Both the position numbers and the translations under genes were made by a program. A stretch of 63,670 bases of DNA, counting the filler, from Octopus bimaculoides (lineage: Eukaryota), in NCBI RefSeq assembly GCF_001194135.2. It is 11 parts of 8 records of this genome, joined end to end, with 100 filler letters (N's around TTAATTAATTAA, not from the genome) between each part and the next. Parts side by side here need not be neighbours in the genome. Positions count along the whole stretch, not along the records: positions 26,938 to 40,393 come from NC_068989.1; 10 more parts are not named here. One strand, 5' to 3'. Shown piece after piece: positions 26,938 through 40,518 of this stretch (position 1 is the first letter of the stretch; each line of letters starts with the position of its first letter). The notes under the pieces are model-generated. The model saw nothing but the letters and a program-made list of their open reading frames with translations. It was not told the DNA's origin and ran no database searches.

Positions 26938-27262
26938 CATATCAAGATAAACAGCGCATGACCTAGCAGGTGGGGCCCAATAAGAATTTTCTTCAGGTCA
27001 AGTAGCCCATCCCGCTCAAAAGGTCCCTGAATAAAGTTTGTTTAAGGATTTTGAGCAAAACACCCATGTTTCCAAAGGTGAATTATTCAAACTCCAAAAC
27101 TACCTCTCAACACATGGCTATGATGCTCCCCCACTACTTCTGCTCATGATCAGAGATGCACATATCGTCAACCACTAAGGGTCATGCTCAACTGGTTAAG
27201 GTCAAACAACTGACAAGCAAATATGTGGTATTAAGCAGAATATTTGCCGTAGCCCATCTTTT
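26938..27262 (+). repeat. Interspersed repeat family D (second copy at 62025-62500)
   Basis: Long colinear similarity (catatcaagataaa...gcaggtggg...tcaagtagcccatccc...agagatgcacatat). Confidence 0.85.
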
Positions 27263-27284
27263 TATACCAAGACAAAACAATGTA

Positions 27285-27285
27285 C

Positions 27286-27354
<69 letters not shown>

Positions 27355-27534
27355 CATTATTATCATCATCATTATTATTATTCTTATTTTTATTATTGTA
27401 TTAAATCTCGCAGCTTATTTTGCTGGATATGATGGAAAGTGTCAGCTGTCCACAGCCAGAAGACTAAGGTGACCCTTGTTTACTGGTCATGCTTCAAGAA
27501 CCCTGCGAAGAATTCTTGCAGCTCCAAGCAATGA

Positions 27535-27588
<54 letters not shown>

Positions 27589-27590
27589 CA
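27285..27590 (-). mobile_element. 5'-truncated R4/Dong-like 3' end (about 27400-27533) between two (TAA)n tracts
   Basis: Minus strand reads LLGAARILRRVLEA* plus 3' UTR, with (ATT)n on both sides. Confidence 0.7.
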
Positions 27591-27789
27591 TTATTCAGTA
27601 GTTTTATTTTTATAACGTGCTTTCNNNNNNNNNNNNNNNNNNNNNNNNNNNNNNNNNNNNNNNNNNNNNNNNNNNNNNNNNNNNNNNNNNNNNNNNNNNN
27701 NNNNNNNNNNNNNNNNNNNNNNNNNNNNNNNNNNNNNNNNNNNNNNNNNNNNNNNNNNNNNNNNNNNNNNNNNNNNNNNNNNNNNNNNG

Positions 27790-28070
27790 CTATTCCATAA
27801 TGTTGGCATAGCTTCCAGTGTATATAGGTCCCCGCTCTGTCGTGTCTGTGAATATATTCCTTCTTAGCCAGGACTGGGCAGCCAGAGATAATATGATTTA
27901 TTGTTTCTTGTCGATCTCCACATATTCTACAGTTACTTGTTATATTTCTTTTCATTATGTGTTTTTGGTAATTTCTGGTGGGGAGGCTTTGATCTTGTGC
28001 AGCAATTAAAAATCCTTCAGTCTCTGCTTTGAGTCCTGAGCTTCTCAGCCATTGCTGGGATTTTTCTCTG

Positions 28071-28072
<2 letters not shown>
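27790..28072 (-). mobile_element. R4/Dong-like LINE fragment (CCHC zinc-knuckle region)
   Basis: WLRSSGLKAETEGFLIAAQDQSLPTRNY...CRICGDRQETINHIISGCPVLAKKEYIHRHD. Confidence 0.9.
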
Positions 28073-28119
<47 letters not shown>

Positions 28120-28121
<2 letters not shown>

Positions 28122-29855
28122 TTCATTTACACAAAACAGATTAGCCTTAATATTGGGCTACAAGTAACCTTAGATGCCAAGAACCCTCCTAAGTATCCTA
28201 GCTATCCCTAATAACACTGGAGCTGCACTAATCTGGGTTTTATACCTATTTCCTCTATCCATCTGTTCAAATATTTAGGGATAGTTCCTAACGCACCCTG
28301 TAGAGCGCCTTTACGGACCCGGATTTTCCAGGGCCGCCGAGAGCGCACCGGACGCCGCCCGAGATGCGGCGCTCTACAGGGGTACATTTTACCCGCACCT
28401 TTCATAGTCTCTGTAATTCAATGGATAGGCCTTGATACTTTGCTATCTTTTCTATACCTCTCATATTGATTTATTTCATCATTTGGGACTGTAAAGTTAA
28501 TCATCTGGCACTTTCTACTGTCTTTGTCCACTACCAAATCAGGCCTTCTAGCTTCTATTACTCTGTTAGTTTGAATGTTAAAGTCCCACAATATCTTATA
28601 TTTTTTCTTTATGTTCATACCATTTGTCAGTAAGGTCAAATCCTAGCTTTCTACATAACTCCCAGTGGTTTACTCTCCGTAGGTTATCATGTCTTTTCTG
28701 GTATTCTTTCTGTGCCAGCATGCTACATTCACTTATATGAGTAACACTTTCCTCTTTTGATTTGCATAATCTACATTGGGAATCTACTTAGTTTTTGTCT
28801 ATTTTGGGTTTTATCCAATTAGTCCTTAATTCTTGATCTTATGCAGCTACTAAAAAACTTTGTGTCTCCCTCTTCAGCTTTCCTTTCTGCAAACATAACC
28901 ATATCTCATTAGTACTATTTGCTGCAACTATCTTTGGAAATCTACCGCGCAAAGCTTTCTCCTGCCAGTCAGATGACTTTTGTTCTTTTTTCTAGTTTTT
29001 GTTTCATTTCGCTTTTTAGTTTCCCTATGTCCTGCTGCTACTCTAGCAGCTCTTGGTAAACTTTCTTCACTATTACCTACATAGGAGTCTATATCTACTC
29101 TGGCTAACTCCACGCAATCTTAGCCCTCTTCCACCTTCCTCAGGTATATTCAGTCAAGACAGAGGTTAACATTTTATACATTGTTGTTAAGCAGGTTATG
29201 GGTCTATAATATTTTGGTTCATTTGTTTCTTCATTTTCTAGAAGTAGGAATGTTACGCCATTAACTAGCCAAGAGAGAATCATACTAGGTTGTTGCAAAA
29301 CAATGTTGTGAAGCTTTGTTAGCAGTTCATGGCTCTCTGGGAAAGCATTCAACCAGAAGTTAAGAATCTTATCCTTTCCTGGAGACTTCCATTTGCTTGA
29401 CTTCCTGAGAGTAGATCTTACAACATCTATCTTGATACCCTCCCATTTTTGCTCTTCTAAGAAGTCTAAGTCTGTAGATATTTTATCAATCCAAGGGGCA
29501 TTTTCATTGTGTTTTTTCTTCTGCCCAAATTTTATTCCAAAATTCCTGCACTTCTTTTGATGGGAAAGACTTTATTGTAACTTGTATTTTCCCTATTTTC
29601 TAGTAAAGATTTTTTGAGTCATTTTTTAACATGTCCTTGAAGAATCTAACGCGACTTTCATACCTTGCTATGCGGGCGGCTTTAGCACATACCTTTTGCT
29701 TGACAGTTTCTTTGGTGGTATCGATGTCAAATATAGTTTTCATATATTTTTTTTATAATATTCGGGTTTTTGTAGGTTTGATAGTCTTGTAGGCTTGATA
29801 GTCTTACGCGCACTTTCCATGGTCTCTGTAATTCAATGGCATAGCTTCCAGTGTA

Positions 29856-29860
<5 letters not shown>
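28120..29860 (-). mobile_element. Internally deleted R4/Dong-like LINE (RT N-terminal part, REL endonuclease, 3' UTR) flanked by (TAA)n
   Basis: YRPITCLTTMYKMLTSVL, KILWDFNIQTNRVIEARRPDLVV, GALGTIPKYL and ARILRRVLGI*; (ATT)n at about 28073-28120 and 29858-29943. Confidence 0.9.
28318..28375 (-). rRNA. 58-nt 28S rRNA fragment inserted in the LINE (not a functional gene)
   Basis: GGCGGCGTCCGGTGCGCTCTCGGCGGCCCTGGAAAATCCGGG matches the conserved eukaryotic 28S segment GGCGGCGTCCGGTGAGCTCTCGCTGGCCCTTGAAAATCCGGG (recalled, not searched). Confidence 0.75.
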
Positions 29861-29918
<58 letters not shown>

Positions 29919-29944
29919 CATTATTATTATTTATTATTATTATT

Positions 29945-30140
29945 AAGGCGGCGAGCTGACAGAATCGTTAGCATGCCGGGTGAAATGCGTTATGAGTTCT
30001 ACGTTCTTAGTTCAAATTCTGCCGAGGTCGACTTTGCCTTTTATCCTTTCGGAGTCGATAAATTCAGTACCAGTGAAGCACTGGGGTAGACGTAATCGAC
30101 TAGCTCACACCCCAAAAATTTCAGGCCTTGTGCCTATCGT
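29945..30140 (+). mobile_element. SINE family B
   Basis: aaggcggcgagctgacagaatcgttagc...gttcaaattctgccgaggtcgactttgcc. Confidence 0.9.
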
Positions 30141-30269
30141 AGAAAAGATTGTTATTATTACTGTTGTTGTTATTATTGTTGTTGTTGTCTTTGTTGTTGC
30201 TGTTGTTATTATTATACGAAAGCTATTACTTGCTAATTAATTAACAGAAATATTAACCTGGCATTGGTG

Positions 30270-30547
30270 ACAAGTCTCCTCAAATCACAAATGTTGTTTC
30301 AGAGTTCTCGCAGAATAAATATGCCTCTTTTTTGCATGTTAACATAACGCATCTCAATTTCAGTACCCTTCAGATTCTTAGGTAATGGTTTGAGTACATC
30401 AATAACTAGAACAACAATTTTCACCCTTATGTTTCACATTCTTTTCATCCCATTAACTGGATCCTGATATTTTTTCAATTTCCTCAGTCTCTTTGATATC
30501 CATTATACTATCATACGGGATTGCAAAGTCAATGATCTCACACTATT

Positions 30548-30550
<3 letters not shown>
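30270..30550 (-). mobile_element. R4/Dong-like REL C-terminal fragment
   Basis: CEIIDFAIPYDSIMDIKETEE...IRVKIVVLVI..LKPLPKNLK. Confidence 0.75.
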
Positions 30551-30641
<91 letters not shown>

Positions 30642-31107
30642 CCATGACCATCTCCGCGCTCCTTGCTTCAACAGTAAGATCATTATCTATGGAGAAATTC
30701 ATAAACCCATGTAAATATCATTCACCATTTTAGCCTCTGTTTCCATCACTTCAAATCCACAAATTCGACTCTAAAAAATTAGTGCATTCTCTTACCGGTA
30801 CAGCCATGTCTACATTTGTACTCTTTTTATGCTAGCTTACTGCATTGACTTGTGTTCAAATACCATTGAGCTCGACTCTGCCTAACATTCATTCGGGGTC
30901 GATAAGATGTCAGACACACGCCTTTCGTGTTTATTTAAATAGATTTGATGCTCTTTAATATTTATAAAGGACTTGAAAGCTTCCTTCGCATCATTATATC
31001 TGTTATTTTGATATCAGTATCACTTCCCAGAATGGACCATCACTAGAGCGATAACCGAATTTTAAATTTTTATTTAAATTTATCAAACTTTTATTAATTT
31101 TTTATTA

Positions 31108-31465
31108 GAAGGCGTGGCTGTGTGGTATGAAGCTTGCTTCCCAACCGCATGGTTCCAGGTTCAGTTGCACTACGTGGCACTTCAGCCAAGAGTCTTTTAC
31201 TATAATTTCAGGCCGATTAAAGCCTTCTGAGATGATTTTGTAAATGGAAACTGAAAGTAACCCGTCGTTTGTATTAGTCCCCCACCACCACTTAACAACC
31301 GATGTTGGTATGTTTACGTCCCCGTAACCTAGCGGTTCGGCAAAAGAACCCAATAGAATAAGTGCTGAGTTTGAAATTAAAGTCCTGGGTCGATTTGTTC
31401 AACTGAAAAGCATTTCAAGGCGGTGCCCCAGTATGGCCGCAGCCAAGTTACTGAAACAAGTAAAA
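31108..31465 (+). mobile_element. SINE family A, near full length
   Basis: Colinear with 9648-10045. Confidence 0.9.
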
Positions 31466-31646
31466 GAAGAAGAGAAAAAAAGAAATTTTTCACTATAGGA
31501 AAGCAAAAATTAAGTACAAAAACTGGTTTGTTTCAGATGTTTGTTTATTTCAATAGATTTATGCAATGTACACTATAATAACTAAAATTTGGTTGGTTGT
31601 GATGACTTCAGTTCCGAGAATGACATGCATTATTAAACTGTATTTA

Positions 31647-31810
31647 AGGTGGCGAGCTGGCAGAATCGTTAGCCTGCTGAGTGAAATGGTTATTGGTATT
31701 TCGTCCAACCTTGCGTTCTGAGTCGTCGAGGTCGGCTTTGCCATCTATCCTTTCGGTGCCGATGAAATAAATACCAGTTACGCACTAGGGTCGATGTAAT
31801 CGACTTGTGC
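31647..31810 (+). mobile_element. SINE family B
   Basis: aaggtggcgagctggcagaatcgttagc... Confidence 0.85.
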
Positions 31811-31985
31811 TATAGTAGAAAGGATTATTAAATTGGATTAGTCAGTGAATTATATTTATATTCTTGTCGTCAGCTGTGGTGATTTTGTCGCTGTTCTTCA
31901 AGAATCCCTCGATGTTTGGGTCAAAGTTGATCAAAATAAGTAGATATTTTTACAAGACAAGCTATGGAAGAATTCAGCCTTCTTT

Positions 31986-32116
31986 CTACCTTGGTGCGGC
32001 CCCTGGAACGAAGTCTGATGGTAGGGTGTCTGGGACGTGGGCGGGTACATCATGGGCAAGTGCGGCACCTGGAAACTTGACTGAGTTTGCAACTTCAGCA
32101 CCATAGGCGTTGTTTA
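31986..32116 (-). CDS. Last coding exon of a small secreted-peptide gene: (V)NNAYGAEVANSVKFPGAALAHDVPAHVPDTLPSDFVPGAAPR*
   Basis: Acceptor cattcatattttag ending at 32117; GC-richer open frame to TAG at 31988-31986; phase 1 matches the upstream exon. Confidence 0.75.
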
Positions 32117-33446
32117 CTAAAATATGAATGTCGACACATTAATATATATANNNNNNNNNNNNNNNNNNNNNNNNNNNNNNNNNNNNNNNNNNNNNNNNNN
32201 NNNNNNNNNNNNNNNNNNNNNNNNNNNNNNNNNNNNNNNNNNNNNNNNNNNNNNNNNNNNNNNNNNNNNNNNNNNNNNNNNNNNNNNNNNNNNNNNNNNN
32301 NNNNNNNNNNNNNNNNNNNNNNNNNNNNNNNNNNNNNNNNNNNNNNNNNNNNNNNNNNNNNNNNNNNNNNNNNNNNNNNNNNNNNNNNNNNNNNNNNNNN
32401 NNNNNNNNNNNNNNNNNNNNNNNNNNNNNNNNNNNNNNNNNNNNNNNNNNNNNNNNNNNNNNNNNNNNNNNNNNNNNNNNNNNNNNNNNNNNNNNNNNNN
32501 NNNNNNNNNNNNNNNNNNNNNNNNNNNNNNNNNNNNNNNNNNNNNNNNNNNNNNNNNNNNNNNNNNNNNNNNNNNNNNNNNNNNNNNNNNNNNNNNNNNN
32601 NNNNNNNNNNNNNNNNNNNNNNNNNNNNNNNNNNNNNNNNNNNNNNNNNNNNNNNNNNNNNNNNNNNNNNNNNNNNNNNNNNNNNNNNNNNNNNNNNNNN
32701 NNNNNNNNNNNNNNNNNNNNNNNNNNNNNNNNNNNNNNNNNNNNNNNNNNNNNNNNNNNNNNNNNNNNNNNNNNNNNNNNNNNNNNNNNNNNNNNNNNNN
32801 NNNNNNNNNNNNNNNNNNNNNNNNNNNNNNNNNNNNNNNNNNNNNNNNNNNNNNNNNNNNNNNNNNNNNNNNNNNNNNNNNNNNNNNNNNNNNNNNNNNN
32901 NNNNNNNNNNNNNNNNNNNNNNNNNNNNNNNNNNNNNNNNNNNNNNNNNNNNNNNNNNNNNNNNNNNNNNNNNNNNNNNNNNNNNNNNNNNNNNNNNNNN
33001 NNNNNNNNNNNNNNNNNNNNNNNNNNNNNNNNNNNNNNNNATATATATATATATATATATACAGGGTAAAGACCAAGTTTCTATCCGAGGCGCAGCCCGT
33101 TCAGGGAATCAAATTCACTATCTCATGATTGTGAGCCCAACACTCTAATCACTAAGCCATGCGCCTTTACGTGTATATATTCCTTTACTGTTGATTGTCG
33201 GGATAAAGACGGCTCAGTAGCATAGTAGAGATTAATAATATATTTTATTTTTGTTGATTCAATCTGTTGCTACTTTGAGTTTCGTCTGTGGATGCACAGG
33301 GTATTTAGGCAAGCTATGCCACATGCATAAATTTGTACACTTTTAATGTGTACAAATTATGTAAATCCAAGTAATTAGCTTCATGTGGCATGAATAATAT
33401 CTAGTGTTGTATTATATGAAAGTTAAAGAAATGTATCCATACTTAC

Positions 33447-33498
33447 CAATTGTAAACAGGCAAAGAAAAGCAAACAGCAGTAACATTGTGACCTTCAT
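33447..33498 (-). CDS. Signal-peptide exon MKVTMLLLFAFLCLFTI(V) (exon 33508-33447 including 10 nt of 5' UTR)
   Basis: Acceptor ttttttctacag, aacaATG context, hydrophobic core, consensus donor G|gtaagt. Confidence 0.8.
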
Positions 33499-34874
33499 TG
33501 TTTTTTATCTGTAGAAAAAAACAACAACAATGAATACAACAACAAGTTTTACTTGCCAACTCATAATGATTACAAGGTGATGATTATTAGTTGGTGTCTT
33601 AGTCTAACTCTGATTGGTCCTGGTTACGTAAGACTATGATCAAAGATCACTGGCATAGGGCATGTAAAACAGCAATTAACAATTTGTCATTTCCTTTATA
33701 AAAACAAAATTCATTATTCTTATGGGGAGTAAGCTGCTATTTCTAGTAAGCCAAGATGACATATATATATATATCTATATATCTATATATATATATATAT
33801 ATNNNNNNNNNNNNNNNNNNNNNNNNNNNNNNNNNNNNNNNNNNNNNNNNNNNNNNNNNNNNNNNNNNNNNNNNNNNNNNNNNNNNNNNNNNNNNNNNNN
33901 NNNNNNNNNNNNNNNNNNNNNNNNNNNNNNNNNNNNNNNNNNNNNNNNNNNNNNNNNNNNNNNNNNNNNNNNNNNNNNNNNNNNNNNNNNNNNTATATAG
34001 GCTCCTCCCGTTAAATTGTTTTAATTGATAGTAGTTATGACTTCTGGGATTTTATTGAAAACTTCACCAACGTCATCATAGTAAATAGATTATAGTTATG
34101 GCTAACTCCTAGTTATCCTGTTTTATGTGTTGCTGTTATACAATATCAGCTAACTTATGTACGACATTTATGAAGTCAGTTCAATAATATGCTGAAATTT
34201 ACAGATTCATCGCTCCAGCTAAACCGTGATTCCACCTAGAACTACATTGCACAATCCGACATGCAGTGTGAATGTCGAGACATTGTATCATCTTGTTATA
34301 TTTCTTTCTGCATCTGTCTGCGAGTAGATTTTGGGTAATGGCCAAGATAATAGATTAGATAGACTTTTAGAGAATGGTAGCTGTTATTCTTCCCTTTAAA
34401 CTATCGCTTGATCTAATAGAAATAGAAACCAAATCACCTTCAAAATTCACACTTTACTACTAAAATTTGATGAATGTAGTTCATTGTAAATACATCACAG
34501 TAGATTTCATCACAGAAAATTAAATCAAATGTATCACCGCCTGTTAATTTCATCTGATATTTCGAGACGATAGATTGTCCGTAAATTCATTGGTATACCG
34601 GACACATCGTTTTAAAATTAATCATCATGCATTTTATTCACAGTACAAATTCATCGCTAAACATTATTTACTGTTTTGCTTTGTATTGTAAATAAACAGC
34701 ATTTCATTAACAATGAAGCAGAAATTCTAAAGCGAAACATTTGCATTTACAATTAGAAAATTTTCACAATACTTAGAAAAAGGAATCATCGAGAACTGAA
34801 GTAATGCTCGCAATAATTTTGCACAAAATAATTTTACACAAAATATTTTACACAAAATATTGAATAGAACTTAC

Positions 34875-34932
34875 CTGTCGATTGACTGGAAATGTAAACT
34901 GATTCTTCAAAAATTATACCCCTATATTTATA
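34875..34932 (-). promoter_or_regulatory. TATA box (34932-34927), Inr TCAGTT (+1 about 34900) and 26-nt non-coding exon 1 ending CAG|gtaagt
   Basis: TATAAA starts 32 nt upstream of the A of a perfect TCAKTY initiator, followed by a consensus donor at 34874. Confidence 0.65.
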
Positions 34933-36149
34933 TAAACCTGAAAACATCTGTTTTAAATCAGCTGTGACATCAAGCGTGATATTTTGTATCTAAGAGATTA
35001 TAAACAATAGAGTAAGTCTGTAAATAATAAATGCTTTTATTGTTATCGTGGTAAGCATTTTTATAGACTATTGTTCGTTAAATCGTACTTATTTTGCTGA
35101 ATCTTTCTTAACCAACTAATCTTTTAAAACCAACTAAAGCCTCTTAAATGCATGACTGAATACCAAACATCAATATATGGATTACTGTTTTATAAAGATT
35201 AAAGGCTATCTTTTATTAATTAATGCTGTTATTTTAATCAGCTCAAATCCCGGAAACATTGATAGTCAATGAATGTCAAAATCACATAGAATTGGAATCA
35301 GAAGAATTCTTAGAACGTTTCTTCCCTCCCCAATTTAAAGTAGTAAATCGTTTGACCACATTTTTTGTGATCCTAATTGTTAAAGTAGCTTCATAGTTAG
35401 ACATCAATTAGCAAATATATACTATAGTCAAAGACCACCAACTGTAAAATTGTCGTGATTAGAATTATTGTATATCTAAAAGAAATCTCAAAAAAACTGA
35501 TGGAAAATAGTGTGCAATAATTACAAAAAAGATACGAGTTCCTGTCTATCTTAAAAGGGACTGGGAAGATATGGGAAGATAGAAAATAACGCTGAAGGGA
35601 TTTTTTCATAGAAAATAACAAACGAAATTTAGAAGATAATTAAGAATGTAAAGCATTATATATGCAAAATACTCTTAATGAAAAATTGTACCTAAGTGTG
35701 TTATTAGACTTCCTAATGGCGAACCAAGTAAGTATCCAAGATGAAATTTTGAAGGGACATATTCGTTAAAAATGATACTATTAGCGGCGGAGGCAGTATT
35801 AATACCGAGAGTTACTATATATCGCCACTCAAACGTGGATGTTATGCTAGAATAAACTTTACTGCAGTAGATACCATGAGAGAAACTCTCCTATAGGCTT
35901 TTGGTGCAAAATGCACTCTTGTGAATATCACTAGCGGAGAGATAAATTCCCACCAACTCCAGCACCAAGACCACCAGCTCACGGGATTTCTACCTTCTTT
36001 TGTCTTGTCAATGATAGACACTCGACCGTTAGCGATAGCAGTTACTTATCTCTTTCAGTATATATAGAAATTCAGTGCCAGATTGATGTAACGATTAAAC
36101 AGTGAAATTATTAATAATATACACTGAATACAAGTGTGTGTGTGTGTGT

Positions 36150-36325
36150 GTGTGAGACTGTGTTTGACAACCGATGCTTGTTTACGTCCCCGCGACTTTG
36201 TGGTTCGCCAAAAGTGAATAAGTAGCGGAATAAGTACTTTGAAAATAAGTACTTGGGATCAATTTATTCAAGTAAACCTTTCGAGGTGGTATTCCAGCAT
36301 CAACCGCAGTCCAATATCTAAAGAC
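36150..36325 (+). mobile_element. SINE family A, 3' half
   Basis: ttgacaaccgatgc...tttacgtcccc...aataagtac. Confidence 0.75.
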
Positions 36326-36829
36326 AAGAAAAAAATTAAAGTAAAAATTAGACGTAAAATATTTCTTGCAAGTAGAGCGGACCACTTAGACGTTGTTTTA
36401 ATCAACTATTGACGGATGAAAGATAACACCAACTCGGCCAGTCGTGAAAATGCAAAACTGAATTAAACAACAAGCTATACTACGCGTTGCTCTACAGATT
36501 TTTTCATTCATTACCTTTTAGCAAGTACAACAGCGATTTGTAATATTAATACAAGGCTACAAGATGTTGGACTGATTGTAATCGATTAAATAGCTCAGCA
36601 ATGTTTATTTCAGTCCTGGGAATATTGAAAGGTAAAATTGTGCGCTCAAAACGTAAAAGGAAATGTATAAATACAATAAAACAGATTGTCCAGCTCATTA
36701 CCAAAGAAACTGTTAGTTATATTGGTCTACTACTTTATCAAAATTCTTGGATGGTCCACCAATATGCTAAAAATAACAGCAAATTCCACTCAAATTGCTC
36801 ACCTTCATCTTAAAATAGTTCTTATTGTG

Positions 36830-37380
36830 TAATGTAGACTTTACTATGACGGAAAAAATGTCTACGAGACACCACCTGCTCTGAGGCATGATATAGTTGC
36901 AAAGACTGTTTACAATGCTATCTGCAGAAAGGATTACTCTGAAGTATGCATCAAAGGCATGTCAGAACCAGCAGGTATTCACATTTTTTAAAACAAGGAA
37001 TACTGGTCGAACACCCCGATAAAAACATCAACTTGGTGCAAGCATAACAGACCTGATATTGTTCTATGGGACAGGGAATGAAAATCATTCACTGATGTAG
37101 AGGTCAGATGCTCGGCGGAGGTGAATGTACAATCAAAAGTCTTGGGAAAAGAGAATATTTATGGCGAATTAATGCGGAACGTACAGCTCTTGTACTCTGA
37201 TTATGAATTCTGGTTTGTACCTACAATCATAGGTGCATTAGGTTATGTACAAGCAAATTTGTACAAAAATCTAGAAATACTCGGCTTCACAGAGAAGAGC
37301 AAAAGAAACTGACGCGAATTTTCCAAGTTCAATCTATTAGTGGCACACTGAAGATTTGTAAGACATTCCAATAATTCTCC
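36830..37380 (+). mobile_element. REL-endonuclease LINE C-terminus (R4/Dong/NeSL-like)
   Basis: RHDIVAKTVYNAICRKD, KHNRPDIVLWD, KENIYGELMRNVQLLYSDYEFWFVPTIIGALGYV. Confidence 0.85.
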
Positions 37381-37617
37381 ACCTGAGATTCTTATGTGAA
37401 TAGATGCACACACTTGGGTGTATTCATCGACAGTTCAACCAACTTACCAACTCAACCACATATTTGCAGCACATGAAACTCTCTTAACTAAAAGTCTTCT
37501 CGCTTTGTTATCGACCGGTTTCAATTCTCTGAAGATCATAAAACTCAAAAGTAAAATATGTAAGCATACATTAATGCATACATACATAAATACATATATG
37601 CATGCATTCATAAATAC

Positions 37618-37659
<42 letters not shown>

Positions 37660-37661
<2 letters not shown>

Positions 37662-37863
37662 TGGGATCCTGGGATATGTAACAGACTGCCTAAATACCAA
37701 TCTTGAGAAATTAGGCTTCTCAAAACCAGAAAGGAGAAAGCTGATTCGAAGACTACAGATCCAATCCATCACTAGAACTGTAAAAATCTGTAAAACTTTC
37801 CAGAAGTTTATCATTTAAGTATATATGAGCATATCTAGATATGCAACTATATGCATGAGAAGA
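37660..37863 (+). mobile_element. 5'-truncated 3' end of a related REL LINE embedded in (TACA)n
   Basis: ILGYVTDCLNTNLEKLGFSKPERRKLIRRLQIQSIT.TVKICKTFQKFII*, with (CATA)n on both sides. Confidence 0.8.
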
Positions 37864-38713
37864 CATACATACATACATACATACATACATACAAAAATAC
37901 CCCGTTGATGTTGAAATTCCAATAAAGGAGCCTTGGAATTAGGTTAGAAACTGGTCCTTTCTCTACTGGCAAAAAATCTTGAAATAAAACTGAATCTGTA
38001 CATATGCATACATGCATACATGCATATATACATACATACATACATACATACTCACATATAGACATACATACATACATACATACATACGTACATACATATA
38101 GACAGACATACATACACATCGCAATCCCTTCTCATCTCCCATCTTGACATTCGTCTTCTCCAGCTCTTTATCATATGTAGATAACGTCATTTTCAATTAG
38201 AAACACTGCGACTTCATACATTTTTTCTGAACGCATTCTCCTTTCCTTTAGACGGATCAGCAATTTGAGTGAATTTTAGGTTCCAGAATTTCAGTACTCT
38301 TGCCTCTACCTGCATCCACAAGGTACCTCATGCTGGCTCCCTCTCTCGTTCTAATATCGGTCTTTTCATCTATAACATTACTTACCTGCTGCCCACCCCT
38401 CGTCTACTTTCCACATCTCTGATCGCTTTACATCCACTGACATCTCTGTAGTTTATTTTATATGACAGAAACTGATAAAGTGTTAGCCGATCGTTTTAGG
38501 CAGCCAACATTTCTTAGATTTCCAACAAAATAGCGTTGGATCATTTTAGTCAGCCGCTTGCCATTTCAAGCCGCCGCACCGACCTTTATCTTATGGTCTC
38601 TTCTGTTTCCATCACAAACAACAGTTGAATTTCTGCTTATGAAAAGACGCCAGTCGAAATATCAGCAATCCCCTTGTTTTCCTCTAACCAACACACACAC
38701 ACACTCTCTCCCC

Positions 38714-38753
<40 letters not shown>

Positions 38754-38834
38754 NNNNNNNNNNNNNNNNNNNNNNNNNNNNNNNNNNNNNNNNNNNNNNN
38801 NNNNNNNNNNNNNNNNNNNNNNNNNNNNNNNNNN

Positions 38835-38906
<72 letters not shown>

Positions 38907-40133
38907 ACATACACACACATACAAATACACGCACGTAAACATCCAGAATATTCATCACCCTCATCTCTCACGCGTTATACACGATGTTTTGCTTACATCT
39001 AAAAACACTTGATGCCTATCTATTTATTAAGTATACATTTTATTTTGTCGATATCTCATGCATCCTATTATATCATTTACAGCATAAATCCTATTGTATC
39101 AACATCATACTAGCTCATATATACGCAATTACGCTTCTTATGTCAGTATCACCTGAATCGTTTTTACCCTTACCTTCAATTTCTACACTCTCTTCTCAAG
39201 CACATTTACAAAACTGCTCCTACATTCAGAAACCACTTACACCCGTAAGCTTTCATTTTGTTGTTATTTAACAAGCTGCTTTTAACAAGCACTTTTTTCT
39301 ATAACAAGATGTTTAATTAGAAGTAAATTTCCTCTCTTGTCCACCGATGTTGACAAGAGACAACCTATCCGAAAACTCGATATTTCTTCCCTTTTATTCA
39401 CAGTGTAATAGGTTGATATTTTTACTATTGCTTGTTCTTGATATTTTGAGGAGTTTGGGAGAAAGGGTTGTTTTGTTTTGTTTTTTTTTTGTTTTTTTAT
39501 TTATCTGTTTTCGCTTTCTTTTTTTATTTTATCGTTGTGGATATTTCTATTTCTGCAATGACGGAAATTAAATCTGAGGATTACATGAATACTGGATTTC
39601 GAATTCTGAAGAGAGCTGTTTAAAGTTTGGTATCAAAAAAGTTTCAGCTGCTCAAACAATCAAACAATGATTGCGATAAGGGATATACACAAACAATAGT
39701 GCTCACACACACATACATATGCACATATGACAGACGTAAATTTAGATTAACACACACATACACAAACACATATATACTCACAGAACCTATTTCATTTACA
39801 ACATGGCTGATTGTGAGATATTTTCCAAGACGGCAATAAAGCATTACAGAGACAAAATATAAATAACAATGTATTTGTATTCCAGAATATTCGATAAAAT
39901 TTGCAGTTTGCAAAAGTACTGAATGAAAATTTATTTCAATGCGGAAAAATAAAAATCAACAAATGCAGAATTGAATTGACTTAACATAAAACTAGTTCTC
40001 TCGCAGTTTGTCGGTTTCAGAAGGTACAAAAATAAAACTCCGAATAGCAGTATTTGGTTTTGATACCAATGAGTCTCAAAAGAAGCTACTTTGCTCGTTG
40101 CGAATCAGTGACCGATGGTCGCTTTGTTTACAA

Positions 40134-40235
40134 TATATTGCTAGCTGGAGTGAACCCTGGCAATCTCTCTGGCGACGAGGTGCTCGCAACTGCAGATGAG
40201 CCAACCAGCTCGAAACTAAGTCAGTCTTGCTGTTA
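40134..40235 (+). mobile_element. Probable Penelope-like terminal-repeat remnant with a degenerate hammerhead (40186-40230)
   Basis: C(A)GAUGA-GAGC-like stem II (GAGC CAACCA GCUC)-GAAA-CUAAGUC. The upstream 40 nt resemble 60964-61010, next to a Penelope ORF remnant. Confidence 0.5.
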
Positions 40236-40518
40236 GATGATGGTAGAGGCTCGCTCCCCTGCTAGAAATATATATGTATGTACAGAGTGCAGGCTGCACC
40301 GATAACCAGCTGGCGGAAAATCTGCCTGAGGTTAAACTAGTAGAAACATGGAACAACCACTTTAATGTGGCGATTAACTTGACTGATATATATNNNNNNN
40401 NNNNNNNNNNNNNNNNNNNNNNNNNNNNNNNNNNNNNTTAATTAATTAANNNNNNNNNNNNNNNNNNNNNNNNNNNNNNNNNNNNNNNNNNNNAGATATA
40501 TACATACATATATATGCG

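Follow-up and report, generated by a model that had tools for sequence, protein, structure and literature searches.

Many lineage-specific genes are reported from octopod genomes, and they have been described for Octopus bimaculoides, Callistoctopus minor and Hapalochlaena maculosa (PMC7656900). Here we describe a candidate for this class, a three-exon gene read from the minus strand at positions 31986-34932 of a 63,670-nucleotide window (filler included) that joins 11 parts of 8 records of the O. bimaculoides RefSeq assembly GCF_001194135.2. The part that carries the gene, positions 26938-40393 of the window, comes from NC_068989.1 and is called the piece below (13.4 kb, of which 12.1 kb is read sequence, 35% GC). 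Like other octopod orphan genes it is short, it lies among transposon fragments, and its product has no relatives outside the species in the protein libraries that were searched.

Other described systems share part of this profile. Mollusc neuropeptide and peptide-hormone precursors resemble the predicted product in being small pre-proteins that start with a signal peptide, lack Cys and end in a basic residue open to trimming by a carboxypeptidase. Proline-rich antimicrobial peptides share with it a short, predicted secreted, Cys-free, disordered and Pro-rich chain (6 of 37 residues in the octopus mature peptide), and SPRR-like and elastin-like VPGXG proteins share a composition rich in Pro, Ala, Gly and Val together with short internal repeats, here FPGAA/VPGAA. 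Given the sequence signals described below, we consider that the locus is probably a real orphan small secreted-peptide gene of O. bimaculoides, and one that has already been annotated (A0A0L8HMY9).

Results

Database identity and search for relatives

Splicing of the model gives a coding sequence (CDS) of 52 + 131 = 183 nt, which encodes the 60-residue product MKVTMLLLFAFLCLFTIVNNAYGAEVANSVKFPGAALAHDVPAHVPDTLPSDFVPGAAPR followed by a stop. This product is identical over its full length to the UniProt entry A0A0L8HMY9_OCTBM, an "Uncharacterized protein" of Octopus bimaculoides (100% identity and coverage, 60/60, E = 2e-32), and an exact look-up returned UniRef100_A0A0L8HMY9, a singleton cluster present in UniRef and MetaClust. 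The exon-intron model and 60-residue product of the first-pass annotation are those of the published draft-genome gene model, which was produced independently; it is the same gene, to which the proposed exon 1 and promoter are additions, since the UniProt entry documents the protein only. The peptide had been presented as unrecognised and as missed by the track of open reading frames (ORFs). Its presence in UniProt disposes of the former, and the latter stands only in part: the gene is absent from the prokaryote-style ORF list because its CDS is spliced and exon 3 has no in-frame ATG, GTG or TTG, but it was already a public model. The O. bimaculoides genome annotation is said to have drawn both on ab initio prediction and on transcriptomes from about a dozen tissues.

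A word-indexed search of 5.8 billion proteins and an exhaustive phmmer search of 1.84 billion representatives each returned the query alone, so that no homologue was detected outside this narrow lineage in the protein libraries searched. Nothing was confirmed among JGI metagenome contigs, and when the exons were compared with the 13.4-kb piece by tblastn and blastn, no paralogue and no second copy of any exon came up. Pfam holds no family that matches the mature peptide, and the full pre-peptide gave only a sub-threshold signal-sequence match (SVM_signal against residues 2-20, E = 0.024), which reflects the same composition as the signal-peptide call below. Among PDB sequences there was nothing meaningful, the one match being to an antibody signal peptide at E = 1.2. 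In the literature no mention was found of the accession A0A0L8HMY9 or of four peptide strings from the product, and publications on octopus secreted or neuropeptide genes held nothing specific to this gene.

The libraries consist of proteins, and small unannotated orthologues in other octopus genomes are invisible to them. Furthermore, a coverage check with the ORF of a neighbouring long interspersed nuclear element (LINE) found only anonymous ENA contigs, at up to ~60-80% identity, which weakens the no-orthologue result. The gene had been described as lineage-specific, and the lack of any relative in the libraries searched fits such a gene; the term would here resolve only to "annotated nowhere else".

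Predicted product

The N-terminus of the 60-mer consists of Met-Lys, a 16-residue hydrophobic core (residues 3-18, VTMLLLFAFLCLFTIV; Kyte-Doolittle means of 2-3) and a polar NNAYG. The signal-peptide call is rule-based, using the n-, h- and c-regions and the (-3,-1) rules, and by these rules the product has a positively charged n-region, an h-region of the length required (7-15 residues or more) and a polar c-region with small neutral residues at -3 and -1. In the (-3,-1) scan, residue 23 (AYG/AE, Ala and Gly being at these two positions) was the sole cleavage candidate at the end of the core. The hydrophobic core stops exactly where the exon 2 donor lies, the intron being in phase 1, and exon 3 brings the c-region and the cleavage site. 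Introns in phase 1 are known to be over-represented close to signal-peptide cleavage sites, and an arrangement of this sort is typical of secreted proteins. Direct joining of exon 2 to exon 3, with no exon in the gap between them, is argued for because the h-region ends at the donor and the c-region begins at the acceptor.

Cleavage at this site would leave a 37-residue mature peptide of 3.72 kDa with an isoelectric point (pI) of 5.26 and a charge of -2.0 at pH 7, containing 8 Ala, 6 Pro, 5 Val, 1 Lys, 1 Arg and 0 Cys. The product includes the stretches AEVANSVK, FPGAALAHDVP and FPGAALAHDVPAHVPDTLPSDFVPGAAP(R), and its mature part carries the internal repeats FPGAA/VPGAA and AHDVP/AHVP. At the nucleotide level, blastn and tblastn against the piece picked out an internal 15-nt repeat in exon 3 (TTTCCAGGTGCCGCA and GTTCCAGGGGCCGCA, 66 nt apart). 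Single-sequence AlphaFold2 gave a confident helix over the signal peptide only, with a predicted local distance difference test (pLDDT) score of ~90 there and ~50 over the remainder, which is consistent with an intrinsically disordered mature peptide. No dibasic site (KR, RR or KK) and no RXXR site is present in the 60-mer, the lone internal Lys (SVK/F) being without an upstream basic residue and the Arg being terminal only. The C-terminus (...PGAAPR, then the stop) has no Gly-basic amidation signal.

Chance expectation and coding signals

Chance rates were estimated by shuffling the piece 2000 times with its dinucleotides preserved. A signal-peptide-like segment that starts at ATG and stays free of stops up to GTAAGT arose at a rate of 0.0005 per shuffle, the same start exon with a pyrimidine-rich acceptor <=45 nt upstream in 0 of 2000, and the arrangement TATAAA-N24-30-TCAGTY-N10-60-AGGTAAGT likewise in 0 of 2000; these criteria were written after the model was seen, so that the significance is overstated, although the margin is still large. 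The word AGGTAAGT occurs twice in the piece. GGTAAGT is found 4 times on both strands of the 12.1 kb, against a shuffle mean of 1.18 (P = 0.034); the minus strand carries all of them, and two are the perfect G/GTAAGT donors of the model. Pairs of TATAAA and TCAGTY number 2 in the real piece compared with 0.08 per shuffle.

The two GGTAAGT copies that the model does not use lie upstream on the minus strand at 38387 and 37448, the former preceded by TATAAA at 38462 and by TCAGTG, which resembles an initiator (Inr). Neither gives an in-frame fusion with exon 2 or 3, and both were rejected as alternative coding first exons; they could be donors of alternative 5' untranslated region (UTR) exons at most, belong to another transcript, or be due to chance.

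The GC content of exon 3 is 0.557, compared with a mean of 0.353 for the piece; this places the exon in the top 0.8% of 131-nt windows of the piece, and the only other GC run at this level is inside a retrotransposon fragment. When the exon is read in the proposed frame, 50% of first codon positions are G, compared with 10% and 7% of second and third positions (chi-square p = 7e-5); an excess of G at position 1 is classical coding periodicity. The tandem pair GCC CAT GAT GTA CCC / GCC CAC GTC CCA, which encodes AHDVP/AHVP, shows a single in-frame indel of 3 nt and three substitutions between its members. In the proposed frame each substitution falls at a third position and is synonymous, which hints slightly that this frame is the coding one. 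Two rival coding readings of the GC island, an antisense ORF of 80 aa and a sense +1-frame ORF of 57 aa, were rejected with 0 homologues and 0 Pfam matches.

Gene structure

The model was rebuilt by script from the minus-strand read of 31800-35200, and all coordinates and sequences of the first-pass annotation proved exact (Table 1). The CAGCTG and Fox-like words that it had named 5' of the gene are also present in the sequence. There is no ATG in exon 1, and no upstream ATG in the 36-nt spliced 5' leader as a whole. Exon 2 begins with a 10-nt leader, its ATG (33498-33496) stands in the A-rich context AACAATGA, and its 52 coding nucleotides give MKVTMLLLFAFLCLFTI plus 1 nt. With its T-rich acceptor (T7-CTACAG), it is the sole exon in the piece to combine a signal-peptide start, an acceptor and a donor. 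The acceptor tract of exon 3 is CATTCATATTTTAG, and TTAAT, a YTNAY branch-point candidate, lies ~23 nt ahead of the AG of intron 2. Past the stop, variant poly(A) signals (AATATA/TATAAA) are found at 31862-31851, at a distance of 123-129 nt.

Table 1. Features of the minus-strand gene model, in window coordinates.
Feature	Position	Strand	Sequence and remarks
TATAAA box	34932-34927	-	Read directly; 32 nt 5' of the A (34900) of TCAGTT; putative promoter use
Inr-like TCAGTT	34902-34897	-	Read directly; fits YYANWYY; proposed +1 is A 34900
Proposed non-coding exon 1	34900-34875	-	26 nt, AGTTTACATTTCCAGTCAATCGACAG; donor CAG/GTAAGT
Intron 1	34874-33509	-	1366 nt as assembled; holds a 191-N gap (33803-33993)
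Exon 2	33508-33447	-	62 nt; acceptor TTTTTTTCTACAG / GTTGTTTTTTTCTACAG; donor TTG/GTAAGT, phase 1
Intron 2	33446-32117	-	1330 nt as assembled; holds an 890-N gap (32151-33040)
Exon 3, coding part	32116-31986	-	131 nt, (V)NNAYG/AEVANSVKFPGAALAHDVPAHVPDTLPSDFVPGAAPR; acceptor TTTTAG; stop TAG 31988-31986
Probable 3' UTR	31985-31544	-	From the positions of the poly(A) signals

The 890-N gap ends 34 nt 5' of the exon 3 acceptor. On the plus strand its flanks read ...TTAATATATATA-N890-ATATATATATATATATATATAC..., and those of the 191-N gap read ...ATATATATATATATAT-N191-TATATAGG.... Because (TA)n stands at either side of each, both intron gaps look like microsatellites that short reads failed to span, and not like places where unrelated DNA was joined. 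Between the acceptor and the 890-N gap the exon 3 frame is closed by an in-frame TAA (32141-32139), and exon 2, if read through into intron 2, meets a stop after 11 codons. The reading frame therefore crosses neither gap, the continuity of the CDS is a matter of splicing only, and since the coding frames touch neither gap, gap length and frame are irrelevant to the CDS.

The piece contains 4 gaps, 3 of which are inside microsatellites, namely the two intron gaps and a third at 38754-38834 that has (CT)n on one side and (AC)n on the other. The remaining gap (27625-27788) has unique sequence on both sides and breaks a retrotransposon ORF. Intron 1 also holds a 14-15-nt tandem repeat (AATAATTTTACACAA, ~3.3 copies) at 34812-34861, which begins 13 nt past the exon 1 donor.

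Genomic surroundings

Fragments of a retrotransposon without long terminal repeats (non-LTR) occupy 27494-29352 on the minus strand, downstream of the gene. The ORF at 27494-28126 matches Pfam zf-RVT (E = 3e-5) and is interrupted by the 164-N gap mentioned above; its relatives, 50-80% identical, are on anonymous ENA contigs, and in one of these contigs the relative follows a same-strand RVT_1 ORF at a distance of ~1.6 kb. The ORFs at 28208-28639 resemble the usual C-terminal tail of non-LTR elements. An interspersed repeat of ~160 nt, which resembles a short interspersed nuclear element (SINE), is present in two same-orientation copies (29943-30101 and 31644-31805, 82-89% identical). The second copy begins ~180 nt past the stop of the gene and would be inside the 3' UTR if the AATAAA at 31549 were used. 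Beside the 890-N gap, a minus-strand stretch of intron 2 at ~33090-33170 (GGCGCATGGCTTAGTGATTAGAG...GAATTTGATTCCCTGAACGGGCTGCGCC) is like the tRNA-derived head of a SINE, with A-box- and B-box-like motifs recognised by eye. ARAGORN reported no tRNA at this stretch, and the tRNA scan of the piece found no tRNA genes.

Upstream of the gene there are further repeat fragments and (CATA)n blocks. The (CATA)n/(TGTA)n microsatellite blocks at 37565-38116 gave Rfam microRNA matches (mir-297, mir-1277 and others) of 27-43 bits against gathering scores of 81-101, which were discarded as low-complexity artefacts. The motif CGGGGACGTAAACA...CATCGGTTGT is common to 31110-31470 and 36180-36250 on the minus strand, and these stretches look like pieces of another abundant interspersed repeat.

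Discussion

In the explanation that we favour, a TATA/Inr-type promoter would drive a three-exon transcript, and the first ATG of this transcript, in exon 2, would start a 60-residue pre-peptide. Exon 2 would encode the n- and h-regions of the signal peptide, with the phase-1 intron parting them from the c-region and cleavage site in exon 3. Signal peptidase would then cut after AYG (residue 23) and send a 37-residue peptide into the secretory pathway. This mature peptide (~3.7 kDa, rich in Pro, Ala and Val, mildly acidic) may have grown partly via internal duplication, as the pairs FPGAA/VPGAA and AHDVP/AHVP suggest. It would be secreted essentially whole, perhaps with the C-terminal Arg trimmed off, and would form part of a secretion or of the extracellular matrix; such a fate, and not that of a classical neuropeptide, seems the most likely because prohormone-convertase and amidation sites are lacking. 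The sequence signals, the identity to the annotated model and the lack of relatives in the searched libraries are observed; transcription, translation, cleavage, secretion and role we infer.

Several points weigh against a real gene of this kind. Since the UniProt model comes from the same gapped assembly, and perhaps from the same sequence signals, its agreement with ours is not fully independent and counts as corroboration, not proof. Among 153 billion called gene positions the exact product is off record, which could mean that later annotations dropped the gene or simply that the genome was not indexed. As no homologue was found in the libraries searched, conservation offers no evidence for coding. 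Three frames are open across the exon 3 region, and an open frame there says little by itself. The stop is followed by no canonical AATAAA until 31549-31544, 436 nt away. Nor is the TATA and Inr pair unique, as a second TATAAA at 35194, 260 nt upstream of the first, is followed ~30 nt on by TCAGTC (minus strand, 35155-35194), with no good donor after it. Either this second pair is an alternative start site or the motif pair is not very specific in AT-rich DNA, and the TATA and Inr pair by itself is weak evidence of a promoter.

Some of these points would also suit a locus that is transcribed, or merely predicted, and whose 60-codon ORF is not a functional protein. The ORF would then be young or spurious and carried by a spliced non-coding RNA, or it would be the artefact of an automatic annotation pipeline whose call the first-pass annotation repeated from the same signals. 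We think this unlikely. It would agree with a singleton of just 60 aa whose mature part is disordered, which has no homologue in the searched libraries, is off record in the large gene-position index and has transposon fragments and microsatellites all around it. However, a non-functional ORF would not be expected to acquire by accident a complete signal peptide with its h/c boundary at a phase-1 junction, nor the position-1 G periodicity and GC island of exon 3, nor duplicated motifs in which all substitutions are synonymous, and the chance rate of the start exon is ~0.0005 per piece. The shuffle controls also speak against the more sweeping view that motifs came together here by chance in AT-rich DNA, or that the locus is a transposable-element fragment. 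TATAAA is common in such DNA (19 copies in the piece) and transposon fragments flank the gene on both sides, but its exons are single-copy in the piece, no Pfam or transposon-protein match was found in any frame, and the product is identical to that of an annotated gene. A transposable-element-derived ORF was rejected on the absence of a transposon-protein match and of a second copy in the 13.4-kb piece, and we regard this whole line of explanation as highly improbable.

There is also a small chance that the gene is real and the model incomplete, with coding exons hidden in the 890-N gap, or with the weak donor AAG/GTAGAA at the stop being used to give a longer protein. The gap is only 34 nt from the exon 3 acceptor, the tract of that acceptor is weaker than that of exon 2, and GTAGAA overlaps the stop codon. 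Against this, the (TA)n flanks suggest an unresolved microsatellite and not unique sequence, and the exon 2-exon 3 junction makes a coherent c-region and cleavage site. The 1.84 billion representatives hold no longer protein with these 43 residues, the minus strand downstream has SINE-like and LINE fragments and not candidate exons, and GTAGAA departs from the GTRAGT consensus at +4 and +5.

Beyond the probable orphan secreted-peptide gene, a bolder proposal can be made, of which we are rather doubtful. The gene may encode a recently born, possibly de novo, octopus-restricted secreted peptide that arose in a GC-rich island between repeats and was extended by internal duplication. TATA/Inr-driven expression might then be strong in one specialised secretory tissue (the skin, the sucker epithelium, a salivary gland or the reproductive tract, for example). 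The product, anionic and disordered, might serve there without further processing as a signalling or matrix peptide of a type undescribed in cephalopods.

If the peptide is expressed and secreted, it would add one more lineage-restricted gene of the sort thought to underlie cephalopod-specific tissues, and its small size and clean structure would make it convenient for the study of orphan-gene birth, for peptide synthesis and for assay. There is also some methodological value in the fact that an unaided reading of raw sequence rebuilt a published spliced gene model exactly.

Comparison with known systems

The likeness to mollusc neuropeptide and peptide-hormone precursors ends with processing, as the octopus product has no dibasic or furin-type sites, no Gly-basic signal and no peptide copies set between cleavage sites. 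Furthermore, the conservation across lophotrochozoans, or the orthologues, that would be expected of a neuropeptide precursor were not found among the 1.84 billion representative proteins, which cover annotated proteins only. We therefore rejected a classical neuropeptide precursor, for want of convertase sites and an amidation signal, and on the same two grounds the predicted sequence disfavours a neuro-endocrine reading in general. Proline-rich antimicrobial peptides are strongly cationic and Arg-rich, whereas the octopus peptide has a charge of about -2, a pI of 5.3 and a single Lys and Arg; its calculated pI of 5.26 and charge of -2.0 at pH 7 rule against a cationic peptide of that group. 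It differs from SPRR-like and elastin-like proteins in having two loose repeat pairs in 37 residues and no Pfam match, neither SPRR/cornifin nor any other Pfam family being found above its gathering score. Set beside these systems, the gene is an ordinary member of a known category, that of lineage-restricted genes, and not a new kind of system.

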